Assembly (NCBI RefSeq): GCF_001194135.2
Contig: NC_068997.1
Location: 40,749,721-40,802,489 of the forward strand
From: Octopus bimaculoides
Taxonomy: Eukaryota
Direction of reading: 5' to 3'
DNA: 52,769 bases
In this document: positions 13,577-36,040 of the stretch, in pieces
How positions within the stretch are numbered: the stretch's first letter is position 1
Layout of the letters: every line of letters starts with the position of its first letter
The notes under the pieces: model-generated
Database searches by the model: none
The model's input: only the letters and a program-made list of their open reading frames with translations
What the model was told of the DNA's origin: nothing
Made by a program: the position numbers and the translations under genes

Positions 13577-13795
13577 TGGCGAGCTGGCAGAATCATTAAG
13601 AGCGCAGAGTAAAATGCTTAATGATATTTCGTCCGTCTTTACGTTCTAAGTTCCAATTCCGCCGAGGTCTACTTTGCATTTTATCCTTTACGGATCGATA
13701 AAATAAGTATCAGTTGTGTACTGGAGTCGATGTAATCGACTATCCACCTTTCCCACAATTTCAGGTTTTGTGCTTATAGTTGAAAGGCTTATTAG
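13577..13795 (+). mobile_element. SINE-A full-length copy
   Basis: GGCGAGCTGGCAGAATC head, body, and GTGCTTATAGTTGAAAGG tail variant. Confidence 0.88.
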
Positions 13796-14061
13796 CCAAG
13801 AATATTTTACTCTGTCGTCTGCCAACAACAAATCAATTATTTTGGTTTCTTCGAGATTCTCTCCGCTCTGTATTGTATGAAACCTATACTAGGGTATCTA
13901 TTCAGTCCCATCGTTATACACAAAATCCTTTCTAATATCTTCTACTCACTTCACTAATTCTGTTATTATGTGTGCATGCATATACATACACACACGCACA
14001 TATTTTCCTATACATATACATACATACGCACATGCACACACATATATACATTTATATATGT

Positions 14062-14135
14062 ATGTTATTCTTCTTTTATTCTTCCTTTATAGGTTTCAGC
14101 CCTAAGGATGTGGCCATTCTTGAGCACCGGCAGAG
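14062..14135 (-). mobile_element. CR1/SINE-B-type 3' tail fused to the U6 copy
   Basis: GCCGGTGCTCAAGAATGGCCACATCCTTAGGGCTGAAAC plus an A-rich tail aligns with SINE-B tail GCGGTGCTCCAGCATGGCCGCAGTCAAATGACTGA(A/G)AC (42444-42481) and the CR1 3' UTR at 46031-46012. Confidence 0.75.
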
Positions 14136-14207
14136 AAAAATATGGAACGCTTCATGAATTTGCATGTCATCATTTCAATTTTAGTATGTATTGTATCGAA
14201 GCAATAC
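14136..14207 (-). pseudogene. U6: U6 snRNA pseudogene lacking the central 34 nt
   Basis: Minus strand GTATTGCTTCG..ATACTAAAATTGAAATGATGACATGCAAATTCATGAAGCGTTCCATATTTTT. The 3' block matches canonical U6 GATGACACGCAAATTCGTGAAGCGTTCCATATTTT at 33 of 35 positions, both differences CpG transitions. The 5' block matches ATACTAAAATTGGAACGAT at 17 of 19. Confidence 0.9.
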
Positions 14208-14824
14208 ATACACACCCATACACAAACACACCCATACACAAACACACCCCTACACAAACACACACAGGCACACGCAGACACTTAAAATAGAAATCGGTAG
14301 TTTGTTACTATAGGCTTCGTGTGAATATATTGCCAGTTATTCAATCGGAGTTTGAACAGTGGCTGACAAATTTGGTGTCTAAACAGCGAGCTTTAATGGC
14401 GAGATTTCGTGAGATTAGGGAGAGTACGAGATGTCAACAATTTTGAACTAGTAACAAAGGAGGAAATATATTTAATGGGTAGTAACCATTCCACCACAGT
14501 ATAAATTGACGGTTTCTCTTGTGATTTGTCATAGCTACAAGAATTGTTTACAATATATTTTTGTGTCGTCGTTCTGAAGCAAATGCCGGAAGTAATATAG
14601 TACCGGAATATCTCTAGATAAATATATGGGTAGTATATCGTGTGTACGATATGGATAATGCATTTAGTGCTGGTGTTGGGTGCATTTTCCAGTTTATATG
14701 TGTGCACGTGAGCTTGTATGATGCATTTAAATAAATATGAAGTTGTTATATGCGTATTTGCGTATTGTAATATCAAGTTGAGAGTGTTATAATACTCTGG
14801 AAGTAAGATAACGAAGATAGTGTT

Positions 14825-16377: not shown

Positions 16378-16575
16378 CATTTCTTTTATTTGTTTCAGTC
16401 ATTTGACTGTGGCCATGCTGGAGCAGCGCCTTTAGTCGAACAAGTCGACCCCAGAACTTATTCTTTGTAAGCCTAATGCTTATTCTAACGGTCTCTGTGC
16501 CGAACCGCAAATTACGGGGACGTAAACACACCAGCATCGGTTGTCAAGCAATGGTGGAGGGACAAGCACAGACAC
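16378..16575 (-). mobile_element. SINE-B 3' half
   Basis: Reverse complement of the 3' half of the 42108-42496 copy. Confidence 0.9.
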
Positions 16576-16599
16576 ACAAACATACACACATATATACAA

Positions 16600-16634
<35 letters not shown>

Positions 16635-29441: not shown

Positions 29442-29521
29442 ATGTGTGTGTGAGTGTGTGTGTGTTTGTGTGTGCGCGTGTACACACAGGTACACAAATA
29501 TACACACACATACATAGATAC

Positions 29522-29648
29522 TTACTCTTTTACTCTTTTACTTGTTTCAGTCTTTTTAACTGCGGTCATGCTGGAGCACCGCCTTTAGTCGAGCAAATCG
29601 ACCCCAGGACTTATTCTTTAGAAGCCTAGTACTTATTCTATCGGTCTC
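29522..29648 (-). mobile_element. SINE-B 3' end cut by N gap
   Basis: TTACTTGTTTCAGTC..TGCGGTCATGCTGGAGCACCGCCTTTAGTCGAGCAAATCGACCCCAGG. Confidence 0.9.
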
Positions 29649-33149: not shown

Positions 33150-33553
33150 ATGCAGTAGATTAAATCGACCCTAGTATCTGACTGGTATTGATTTTATTGG
33201 ACTATAAGTGATCAAAAAGGCAAAGTTGACCTGACCGGAAAATGAATTCAGATCCTAAACGGAGGCCACAAAATATTATGTCTGGTGGCTCTACTGATTT
33301 TGCCAATTCACTGCCTTAATAACAATAATAATAATAGTGATTTCAAATTTTGGCACAGCGCCAGCAATTTCCAGAATAGGGGTAAGTTGATTACATCGAC
33401 TCCAGTGCTTGGTTGATACTTAATTTATCGACCCCGAAAGAATGAAAGGCAAAGTCGAGCTCGGCGAAATTTGAACTCAGGACGTAAAGACGGACGAAAT
33501 GCCGCAAAGCATTTTGCTCGACATGCCAACGATTCTGCCAGCTCGTCGCCTTA
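33150..33553 (-). mobile_element. Two tandem SINE-A copies separated by (AAT)n
   Basis: Degenerate copy at 33150-33318 and a well-preserved copy at 33340-33553. Confidence 0.85.
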
Positions 33554-33604
33554 ACAACAACAACAACAACAACAACAATAATAATGATAATAATAATTTA
33601 AATA

Positions 33605-34565
33605 ACTGCCACTAATGAGCGTTTTAAGAAAGATGCGTGTGGGGTACATGCCAGGCAGGGTGAAAGTAAACAACCTGTAGTTTATGGATGACCTAAAGCT
33701 ATTTGCTAAGACTGAGAAAGAAATTGAGAGTTTGACAGCAACTGTGCAGATAATTAGCAAAGATATTGGCATGGCATTTGGGATCGGGAAATGTGGTGTG
33801 AGGATTCTCAAAAGGGGGAAAATCAGTAAAAGCCATGGGATCAAGCTGGAAAGTGGTGAAACTATAAAAGAAGTCGGAGAGGAAGGATATAAGTACCGGG
33901 GTATCATTGAAAGAGATAAGATGAATGAACACAAGATGAAAGAAATGTACAGGAAAGAGTATTTGAGGGGAACTCGGCTTGTGATCCAATCGAAGCTAAA
34001 TGGCCGCTATAAGATTAGAGCAATTAACACGTGGGCTGTTGCTTTGATAAAATATAGGGCAGAAATAGTATATTGGGAGAAGCATGAATTACAAGAGATA
34101 GACCGGAGAACACGTAAATTAACGACAATGAACAAGGAACTACACCCCAAGAGTGATGTGTCAAAATTTAATGTAAAGAGATGGGAAGAAGAACGGGGAT
34201 TAGTGTGTTGTGAAGGTTCTGTTAGGGAAGTGGAAAATAGCCTGGCTTGGTGTGTCAAGGGGAGAAAAAAAATGATCGAAGCAATGAAAGTGCAGGGAAC
34301 CTTAAAAGTGAACGAAGCTGTAGTTCCAACACAGTTTAAGAAAGACCAGAGAGAGCAGATGAAGAAAATTTGGCAGGACAAGAAAATGCAGTCAGTTCTT
34401 GAAGAATAGAGGTGAAACTGATTGGAATAGAACCTGGTAATTGTTGCAGAAAGGAGACTTAAAAGGGCCCACTGAGGCACTAGTGTACAATGCTCAAGAG
34501 CAAGCTCTTAGAACAAGCTAATCCAAATCTTACATTGTTAAAAGCACTGACTCGCCACAGTGAAG
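33605..34565 (+). mobile_element. R4/Dong-clade LINE fragment 1 (RT YxDD region and post-RT)
   Basis: FMDDLKLFAK, IGMAFGIGKC, YKYRGI, KLNGRYKIRAINTWAV, LHPKSDV, GDLKGPTEALVYNAQEQALRT. Confidence 0.92.
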
Positions 34566-35946
34566 GAATGTTACAGAAGAGTTCGAGCAGTTCTAAAATC
34601 CGAGTTAAATGCACGCAACAAGGTATTAGCTATAAACACCTGAGCAGTTCCGGTTGTTTCTTACAGTTTCAATGTGTTGAACTGGAATATGAGCGAAACA
34701 AGGAAGATTCGCAGGAAAATCTGTAAGCTGCTGACTTGCAATACGATGCACCACCCAAAGGTAGACGCAGATCGCCTTTACCATTCCAGAGCTCAAGGAG
34801 GTATGAAGAAGAGCAAAAAATTTGCTAGTGAGTTTATGCATAATACCCAGGTTGAACAGCATGATGGAAGTGCTGCAACTGTAGTTGCAAAGAAGGTGAA
34901 ATCAATAGCAAAACAAAATGCATTTGAACAAATGGCTGATAGGTGGGAACAGAAACCTCTGCATGACAAGTATATGGCTCGTAGAAAACAAGCTGATATA
35001 GACCAGAAGCATACTTATTTGTTGCTACAGAGCTCAGGGAGTGATGTCTTTATCTTTGGCTGCTCAAGATCAGAGCTTATTGACCCGGAACTATCAAGCC
35101 AACGTGATGAAATTTGGATTAGATCCAAAGTGCCGGTATTGAATAGGATAGAAACAGTGGACCACCTAATCTCTGAGTGTAAGGTTTTAGCACCTGTAGA
35201 GTATAAACCAAGACATGACAGTGTTGGCCGCCAACACTGGATAATGTGTTGGCATTATAAAATCAAGACTGCTGGCAAATGGTACAAACATCACCCTGAG
35301 GTTGTAACTGAGGGAGAAAATGTAACTATTCTTTGGGATTTTCCAGTATGTACAGACCGAAGCATCAAAGCAAATAAACCAGATATTGTTGTGAAAGACC
35401 AAAACGATAAAGTCTGTTTATTGATTGACATGTGCATACTCTGTGATCATGATATCTCGGCAAAAGAATTTGATAAGCTCAGAAAATATATAAAGATTTG
35501 CTAATTGAAATCAAAAAGACGTGGCATCTCAAGACGGTTACAATACCAGGAGCACTTGGAATGATCAAAAAAGGAACTGAACATTATCTAACAATGATCC
35601 CTGGCTTACCATTCATACAGGAAGGGCAAAAGTTTGTCTTAACTGGTACGTCACACATACTGAGAAGAGCATCGTCGCTGTGAATTTTCTTTCCTATTTT
35701 CAACTTCATTTTCTTTGTTTACTTTCATTTTACTTTTTTTTATTTTTGTATTTTTATCTCTGTCTTTCTCCCCCTTTTTGTGTATCACATGACTTTGCAG
35801 ATGAACAGCCTGGTGTGTTAATTTGAATGGCCTACCACTGTATACCACGAATTTCTCTGTCCTAGGTGTCAGGAAGACACTCGGCAAGAATTGGAAACAG
35901 AACTGAAAGAAGATAATAATAACAATAATAATAATAATAATAATAA
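34563..35946 (+). mobile_element. R4/Dong-clade LINE fragment 2 (post-RT, CCHC remnant, restriction-like endonuclease, 3' UTR, (AAT)n tail)
   Basis: KECYRRVRAVLKSELNARNKVLAINT, ETVDHLISEC, RHD, TILWDF, ANKPDIVV..IDM..KEFDKLRKY, GALGMIKK. Stop at 35683. Confidence 0.92.
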
Positions 35947-36040
35947 TCCTTTCTACTATAGGCACAAGTAACGCCTGAAATTTGGAGGGAGGGGGTAAGT
36001 CAATCACATCGACCCCAGTGTTTCACTGGTACTTAATTTA
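35944..36040 (-). mobile_element. SINE-A 3' end sharing the (AAT)n tract with the Dong tail
   Basis: AATCCTTTCTACTATAGGCACAAG..CCTGAAATTT..ATCGACCCCAGTG. Confidence 0.85.

Follow-up and report, generated by a model that had tools for sequence, protein, structure and literature searches.

U6-L1 chimeric retrocopies have reportedly been described in mammals, by Buzdin in 2002 and by Garcia-Perez in 2007. U6 is also found joined to LINEs other than L1 and to the SINEs that depend on them. The platypus genome contains 40 U6-L2 or U6-Mon-1 chimeras, which have short L2 pieces, mostly 5'-truncated U6 and target-site duplications (TSDs) of 1-9 bp (PMC4476161); Anolis harbours U6-L1, U6-L2, U6-RTE and U6-AnolisSINE2 chimeras (Doucet et al. 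2015, PMC4476161); and one unresolved, possible U6-CR1 chimera is present in turkey (PMC4476161). Chimeras formed with stringent LINEs are characterized by a short LINE piece, an often 5'-truncated U6, small TSDs and a microsatellite 3' end, and internal deletion of U6 is not reported in that paper, from which the term is absent (PMC4476161). A related type of element is represented by the SINEU families of crocodilians, SINEs that are headed by U1 or U2 snRNA and carry CR1-type tails (Kojima 2015, PMC4494074).

The locus described here lies on the minus strand of a stretch of 52,769 nucleotides of Octopus bimaculoides DNA (the window), and is formed by a U6-like segment joined at its 3' T-tract to a short LINE-type tail. 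Like the vertebrate U6/LINE chimeras, it has a sense U6 at its 5' side, the U-tract of which is joined to a LINE or SINE 3' piece in the same orientation; like the platypus L2 chimeras in particular, it combines a short LINE piece, a simple-repeat 3' end without poly(A), a probably 5'-truncated U6 and a short candidate flanking duplication. It differs from the vertebrate chimeras in its host, which is a mollusc, in its partner, a LINE of CR1-like type or a SINE dependent on it, and in the state of its U6, which has lost 34 nt of its core and has an unusually diverged 5' stem-loop; moreover, it has been seen at a single locus. The snRNA-derived 5' part and CR1-type 3' tail are shared with SINEU, as are an internal deletion (SINEU-3) and internal T-runs. 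However, SINEU are multicopy, with common junctions, subfamilies and U1/U2 heads, whereas the octopus element is derived from U6 and is known from one locus. It is probably a single dead chimeric retrocopy made by reverse-transcriptase template switching. This process is already known from vertebrates, while the host phylum is new and the internal deletion is unusual; no invertebrate U6 chimera or U6-headed SINE was found in the literature searched. A previous description of the locus made from its letters alone (the sequence-only reading) had implied a greater novelty, which was overstated, since U6 chimeras with L2, with RTE, with one possible CR1 and with the SINEs of these LINEs are known (PMC4476161).

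The U6-like segment and its internal deletion

The U6-like segment extends from 14207 to 14136 (-) and reads GTATTGCTTCGATACAATACATACTAAAATTGAAATGAT-GACATGCAAATTCATGAAGCGTTCCATATTTTT. In a permissive Infernal search, the Rfam U6 model RF00026 was aligned to 14205-14136 (-) over its whole length (positions 1-105) with a single 34-column gap, and gave 24.8 bits, below its gathering score of 44; the E-values were 4.9e-4 in a search of 501 nt and 8.9e-5 in a search of 91 nt; across the window no Rfam match reached its gathering score. The 3' part, GACATGCAAATTCATGAAGCGTTCCATATTTTT (14136-14168 (-)), runs through the terminal T5 and forms, together with the GAT that precedes it, a match to the canonical U6 3' 36-mer at 14136-14171 with two mismatches, both CpG transitions; the chance expectation for such a match was 0.00 in 100 shuffles. 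The 5' part, TGCTTCGATACAATACATACTAAAATTGAAAT (14172-14203 (-)), corresponds to human U6 positions ~6-36 in both the Infernal and the pairwise alignments, and comprises a heavily substituted stem-loop region and a well-conserved ACTAAAATTG block. The pairwise alignment was made to a human U6 sequence entered by hand and agrees with the Infernal picture. The sequence-only reading had described a minus-strand U6 from which 34 nt were lost between two GAT trinucleotides, and had proposed a search with RF00026; the single gap, the alignment of the whole model (below the gathering score) and the 36-mer with its two mismatches bear this description out.

Divergence from canonical U6 is concentrated at the 5' end, where about 6-7 of the first ~20 positions differ, versus 5 of the ~57 positions beyond them (~9%), three of these five being CpG transitions; 3/5 CpG sites in the U6 part are mutated. 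The assignment of the 5' part to U6 made previously holds, with the reservation that its first ~20 nt are far more diverged and that the first four nucleotides of the segment (GTAT) may be target-site DNA instead of U6. The 5' stem-loop, GUAUUGCUUCGAUACAAUAC, folds, by prediction, into a perfect 6-bp hairpin (GUAUUG/CAAUAC) that the MFE and centroid structures have in common; simple neutral decay from an ordinary U6 does not account for so much divergence beside an intact hairpin. A reading of the stem as 'compensatory' was nevertheless downgraded, because it is register-dependent, four of the nucleotides may be target DNA and the folding z-score of the whole sequence (-0.6) is not significant. 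For a SINE, a reading discussed below, the hairpin is weak evidence; it is composed of GTAT/ATAC microsatellite motifs and partly of putative target DNA. With its core deleted and a score of 24.8 bits versus 44, the segment cannot be classed as a functional U6. The substituted 5' loop, GCTTCGATACA (14196-14202 (-), element positions 6-16), is two mismatches away from the Pol III B box GGTTCGANNCC; this 11-mer is misplaced for a type-2 promoter and the likeness is probably a coincidence.

The 34 nt that are absent correspond to ACAGAGAAGATTAGCATGGCCCCTGCGCAAGGAT, a block that in canonical U6 has GAT on each side. A GAT microhomology is present at the deletion junction (14169-14171 (-); junction sequence ACTAAAATTGAAATGATGACATGCAAATTC), and because the triplet flanks the missing block at both ends the breakpoint is ambiguous by 3 nt. 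The ACAGAGA box, the AGC triad and most of the internal stem-loop were lost with this block. The U6 part is consequently not colinear with the mature snRNA, and it is probably also ~5 nt short at its 5' end. In the chimeras published so far U6 has no internal deletion, so that the loss would be an extra event beyond the template switch. It could have taken place in either of two ways: while making cDNA, the reverse transcriptase may have passed from one GAU triplet to the other and skipped the internal stem-loop, or the block may have been removed later from the genome by a microhomology-mediated deletion.

A transcribed U6 variant or paralogue, already with the altered 5' stem and the deletion, might instead have been the source, captured once by the LINE machinery. 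Such a source would account for a first 20 nt far more diverged than the rest with the hairpin kept, and for the precision of a deletion lying between two GAT triplets. Against such a source, the stem may be partly target DNA derived from GTAT/ATAC microsatellite motifs, and no U6 gene of any kind, with which the 5' stem could be compared, was found in the window or in two comparison loci, one from O. vulgaris (L001; OX597828.1, 69.9 kb) and the other from O. bimaculoides (L002; CM046617.1, 41.3 kb). Among the accounts considered here, this is the one to which we give the least credence.

The tail and its LINE and SINE relatives

The U6 part is joined to the tail at the natural U6 3' end, where ...GTTCCATATTTTT is followed by CTCT and then by the tail module in the same orientation (junction sequence GTTCCATATTTTTCTCTGCCGGTGCTCAAG). 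The CTCT filler (14132-14135 (-)) shows no homology to U6 or to the LINE/SINE sequence that precedes the module, and in its place other elements have A(A/C)GG(C/T). The module itself, GCCGGTGCTCAAGAATGGCCACATCCTTAGGGCTGAAAC (14093-14131 (-)), contains two hairpins followed by GAAAC and stands at the 3' end of at least four different elements; the filler (14135-14132) and the LINE-type tail (14131-14093) follow the U6 part in the order given in the sequence-only reading. The A-rich tail of that reading is present as an A-rich stretch at 14092-14065 (CTATAAAGGAAGAATAAAAGAAGAATAA) which is really made of two copies of an ~11-nt unit (AAGGAAGAATA/AAAGAAGAATA), in the order CTAT, AAAGGAAGAATA, AAAGAAGAATA and A (14065-14092 (-)). 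These terminal short repeats correspond to (AGTAAAAG)n in SINE and LINE copies. Downstream of the tail there is a TA/TG microsatellite of about 70 nt (13994-14064 (-)), which plausibly belongs to the retrotransposed unit, since TA/TG sequence directly follows the tail in a LINE copy described below and in a SINE copy of the window (w29580). Two pairs in hairpin 1 and one in hairpin 2 are broken in the U6 copy, which fits decay. Sub-threshold Rfam matches to mir-297, mir-466, mir-3149 and mir-1277 at 13957-14063 (-) score up to 53 bits, far below the gathering score of 90, and were rejected as genes; they are TG/TA microsatellite hairpins, repeats that commonly give rise to false positives of this sort.

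In a sensitive self-comparison the tail proved to be related, with divergence, to the ~60 nt at the end of a SINE that is abundant in the window. This octopus SINE has a body with an internal TA/TG microsatellite and ends in the CR1-like module, with the hairpin CAGTCAAATGACTG followed by (AGTAAAAG)n; copies are present in the window at 42145-42495 (+), 41000-41298 (+), 16381-16631 (-) and 29494-29648 (-, cut by an assembly gap), and elsewhere at L001 69385-69780 and L002 18358-18690. The SINE families of the window also occur in L001 (O. vulgaris) and L002 (O. bimaculoides), with 70-94% identity, which identifies the window as octopod DNA and bears out the cephalopod source that the sequence-only reading had thought probable. 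Octopus tRNA-derived SINEs, the OR and OK families, are said to have been reported by Ohshima and Okada in 1994. Such tRNA-derived SINEs of octopus have been annotated as tRNA-Core and tRNA-Deu (PMC8967140). The U6 element has in common with them the 3' module (GGYGGTGCTCCAGCATGGCC, hairpin, CTGAAAC and A-rich repeats), but they have long bodies with an internal microsatellite and dozens of copies per 100 kb, and the U6 element is devoid of their body sequence.

The distribution of the module was examined with a 17-mer scan of the tail in 164 kb of octopus DNA, with up to four mismatches allowed, which returned 13 matches, two of them overlapping at window 46005-46027, and therefore 12 distinct ones, including the U6 tail. 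The module has the form GG(C/T)GGTGCTCCAGCATGGCC-RCA-hairpin-CTGAAAC-A-rich short repeats, with GGTGCNCNAGNATGG as its core, and is terminal in every element with a readable end. The sequences that precede it are unrelated, and comprise two SINE bodies, the ends of LINE ORFs and one unclassified element. Two of the module-bearing copies are 5'-truncated LINE ends (L001 ~63.5-63.93 kb and window ~46.4-46.0 kb), and in both the upstream ORF closes with ..N.LP..LR.L..VDVAVFK..LD.FLS..PDEPT. RNAalifold predicts two hairpins in the module; in an alignment of nine module sequences 89.8% of cells pair, a figure that falls to 18-43% if the partners are slid. Covariation is seen at one pair, which is U-A in five sequences and C-G in three; the observed score was reached by 4/500 shuffles, and the U6 tail shows the C-G state, as does the LINE copy closest to it. 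By these comparisons of sequence, the tail of the U6 element is a genuine LINE/SINE 3' module.

Variants of the module are found in individual copies. In the 5'-truncated CR1-like LINE 3' end at window ~46000-46400 (-), the ORF of which closes ..VDVAVFKERLDKFLSEIPDEPTSG.., the first hairpin contains the 11-mer CTCCAGCATGG in tandem triplication. An element at L002 40330-40460 (+) also ends in the module, in which the hairpin is a variant with full compensation, CAGCCACTTGGCTG; the sequence upstream of it has no match among the SINE bodies and differs from the LINE ORF end as well.

A LINE carrying the module was recognized in a scaffold of the ENA metagenome collection (L029; COWA16-1_SAMN05421426, sample ERZ23491053), which is apparently DNA of a cephalopod (or other mollusc) host within a metagenome assembly. 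Its CR1-like ORF2 (378-1709) has its stop codon 11 nt before GGCGGTGCCCCAGCATGGCCACAGCCTGCGGGCTGAAACAGAGTAAAAGAG; the tail spans 1721-1771 and is followed by (TA/TG)n. The product of this ORF, a 443-aa RVT_1 protein (P0122) returned by a protein search, has the same C-terminus as the module-linked ORF ends. It could be aligned to an avian CR1 ORF2 from the reverse transcriptase to the last residues, including the C-terminal WN.LP...FK..LD region, with 33% identity and an E-value of 6e-55; the avian sequence was entered by hand, and the alignment is also compatible with L2 or with other elements of the CR1 superclade. These sequence matches support a CR1-like partner (CR1/L2 superclade), a designation that stops short of a clade because of the way in which the comparator was obtained. 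The 3' end of the partner LINE consists of a hairpin and short tandem repeats, not of poly(A). The sequence-only reading had seen the tail as a CR1-type LINE 3' end, and the position of the module 11 nt after the stop of a CR1-like ORF2, together with the identity of the two tails, agrees with it.

With 33 of 40 positions identical (82%), the module of L029 is the nearest LINE copy to the U6 tail among those compared. A SINE tail, at L002 31874, is about as close, and for this reason the donor RNA of the tail could have been either that of the LINE or that of one of its SINEs. Two other LINEs were considered and set aside. The first is a fragment in the window (33300-35950 (+)), with ORFs at 33684-34409 and 34674-35504 and a 3' end with (AAT)n; it belongs to a different family with an unrelated 3' end, and only 600 bp of it are common with L001. 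The C-terminal parts of its ORFs have no Pfam matches, and their best database relatives are only ~58% identical. The second, L030, has the same C-terminal domain and a different tail, and is uninformative on the tail of the U6 element.

Candidate target site and proposed origin of the composite element

A pair of identical 12-mers brackets the U6 part, the tail and the microsatellite together. The upstream copy of GTGTGTATGTAT (14204-14215 (-)) forms the final unit of a (TGTGTTTGTGTATGGG)n array that lies upstream of the U6 part (14206-14263 (-)), and it abuts TGCTTCG; its last four nucleotides, GTAT, are those with which U6 begins in the sequence-only reading. The downstream copy (13982-13993 (-)) follows the 3' microsatellite. 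A search for TSDs, as that reading had advised, thus finds a 12-bp repeat on both sides of the unit, but one of low-complexity, microsatellite-like sequence. The 12-mer occurs five times in the window, and in an empirical null a 12-mer of TG/TA type is met again 150-300 nt downstream with a frequency of 1-5%; on account of both figures the repeat is a suggestive candidate TSD, not a proof, and a coincidence is possible. If the TSD is real, the inserted unit would be 14203-13994, i.e. U6 minus about five 5' nucleotides, the filler, the tail and the microsatellite, and GTAT would be target DNA. The empty site would then have been ...GTATGG-GTGTGTATGTAT-ATGCATGCAC..., that is, GTGTGTATGTAT followed by ATGCATGCACAC.

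CR1-type LINEs yield very short 5'-truncated copies, and endonuclease nicks can favour T-rich or A-rich sites, so that an extremely 5'-truncated LINE or SINE tail might have been inserted after the T-tract of an older U6 retropseudogene; the low complexity of the 12-bp repeat also leaves room for such a history. A fragment made of the tail only must, however, have landed within ~4 nt of the place where U6 ends, and with matching orientation, which by chance is very unlikely because the other ~12 modules in the 164 kb include no clear case of a bare tail cut at the module edge. A separate tail TSD would in addition require a repeat of the U6 3' end (CATATTTTTCTCT) after the tail, and there is none at the locus. 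The lack of this repeat and of clear bare tails elsewhere weighs against independent insertions, as does the single 12-bp repeat around both parts. Stand-alone U6 pseudogenes, moreover, are not expected to be made by stringent LINEs (Doucet et al. 2015, PMC4476161). Two independent events are therefore considered highly improbable.

The build of the element is also that of a SINE, and the locus might be one copy of a multicopy U6-headed family, with a deleted U6 head and a CR1-like tail, amplified from a master copy by the CR1-like LINE. The start of the tail coincides with the 5' boundary of the conserved module recognized by the LINE, the tail is common to the partner LINE (33/40 with L029), and the heavily changed 5' region still folds into a perfect 6-bp stem, which could mean evolution as a transcribed RNA; internal head deletions are typical of SINE evolution, as in SINEU-3 and the FLAM/FAM Alu, and U1/U2 snRNA-headed SINEs with CR1 tails exist in crocodilians (PMC4494074). 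Against this stand the copy number and the prospects of transcription. One copy is present in ~164 kb of octopus DNA, versus dozens for real SINE families, a count that disfavours the family while excluding only a very abundant one, as sampling on this scale is nearly powerless below about 10,000 copies per genome. No A box is present within two mismatches, and only the misplaced B-box-like 11-mer is found; Pol III would stop at the T5 that immediately precedes the tail (element positions 68-72); U6 genes depend on upstream promoters, which are lost in a retrocopy; and the microsatellite upstream is without any TATA-like sequence. The candidate TSD, furthermore, puts GTAT, four of the six nucleotides of the 5' stem arm, in target DNA, and no U6-headed SINE was found in the literature searched. 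Membership of a U6-headed SINE family is accordingly regarded as unlikely. Slightly less likely still is its more specific form, an octopod-specific family, mobilised by the CR1-like LINE, in which a deleted head with a remodelled 5' stem-loop precedes the CR1-like tail. If true, U6 would for the first time be known as the head of a SINE class, and the family would need to be transcribed despite the internal T5 and without an external U6 promoter.

Searches of larger collections were of little consequence for copy number. The U6/tail junction pattern had 0 matches in metagenome and viral collections, which hold no octopus DNA, and in a metagenome collection likewise without octopus DNA the tail pattern matched 26 chance 20-22-mers, none of which extended. 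A six-frame peptide query of the element gave no match in a set of 5.8 billion proteins, a result that carries no weight, as a control with the abundant SINE gave only ~7; exact protein matches for three ORFs of the window were also absent.

Template switching is preferred to these accounts because of the sense orientation of U6, the junction at its U-tract, the filler nucleotides, the short LINE 3' end and the candidate TSD around the whole unit, and with the same features the proposal of the sequence-only reading that the U6/LINE process operated here with a CR1-like partner finds support. Target-primed reverse transcription by the enzyme of the CR1-like LINE would have begun at the 3' end of the RNA of that LINE or of one of its SINEs. 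The cDNA would at first have taken in the TA/TG and A-rich repeats at the terminus and then the two-hairpin recognition module, which amounts to about 60 nt in addition to the microsatellite. Once it had come to the 5' edge of the module, the enzyme would have jumped to the 3' oligo-U of U6, with the addition of about four untemplated nucleotides (CTCT in the sense strand), and copied U6 nearly to its 5' end. The product would have been integrated into a TG/TA microsatellite with a TSD of ~12 bp, and the 34-nt core would have been lost by one of the two routes given above. Presumably without promoter or function, the copy would subsequently have decayed, with three of five U6 CpG sites mutated and two tail pairs broken.

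On the template-switching account, the locus would extend U6/LINE chimeras from vertebrates to a mollusc, with a CR1-like partner that has a defined two-hairpin module. It would support the view that non-LTR reverse transcriptases are in general prone to template jumping onto U6, and that such jumping is the route by which the tails of stringent LINEs are joined to small RNAs, the first step in the birth of a SINE. The presence of one module in the CR1-like LINE and in very abundant octopus SINEs points, in addition, to the LINE that drives SINE expansion in octopus. As one decayed locus, the element itself is likely to be of no functional consequence.

Other repeats of the window

The window is AT-rich and contains many TG/TA microsatellites and assembly gaps, and no tRNA was called in it by ARAGORN. 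In its most GC-rich part there is a short RT-like ORF (10244-10540 (+); ..SRAFDWIHHQYL..NGYISKPFSMKISIQDCHLLSLLY..), which is probably another decayed LINE fragment. A second very abundant repeat family, ~210 bp in length and with at least 29 copies in 164 kb, is represented at 13577-13794, 200 bp from the U6 element, to which it is unrelated.
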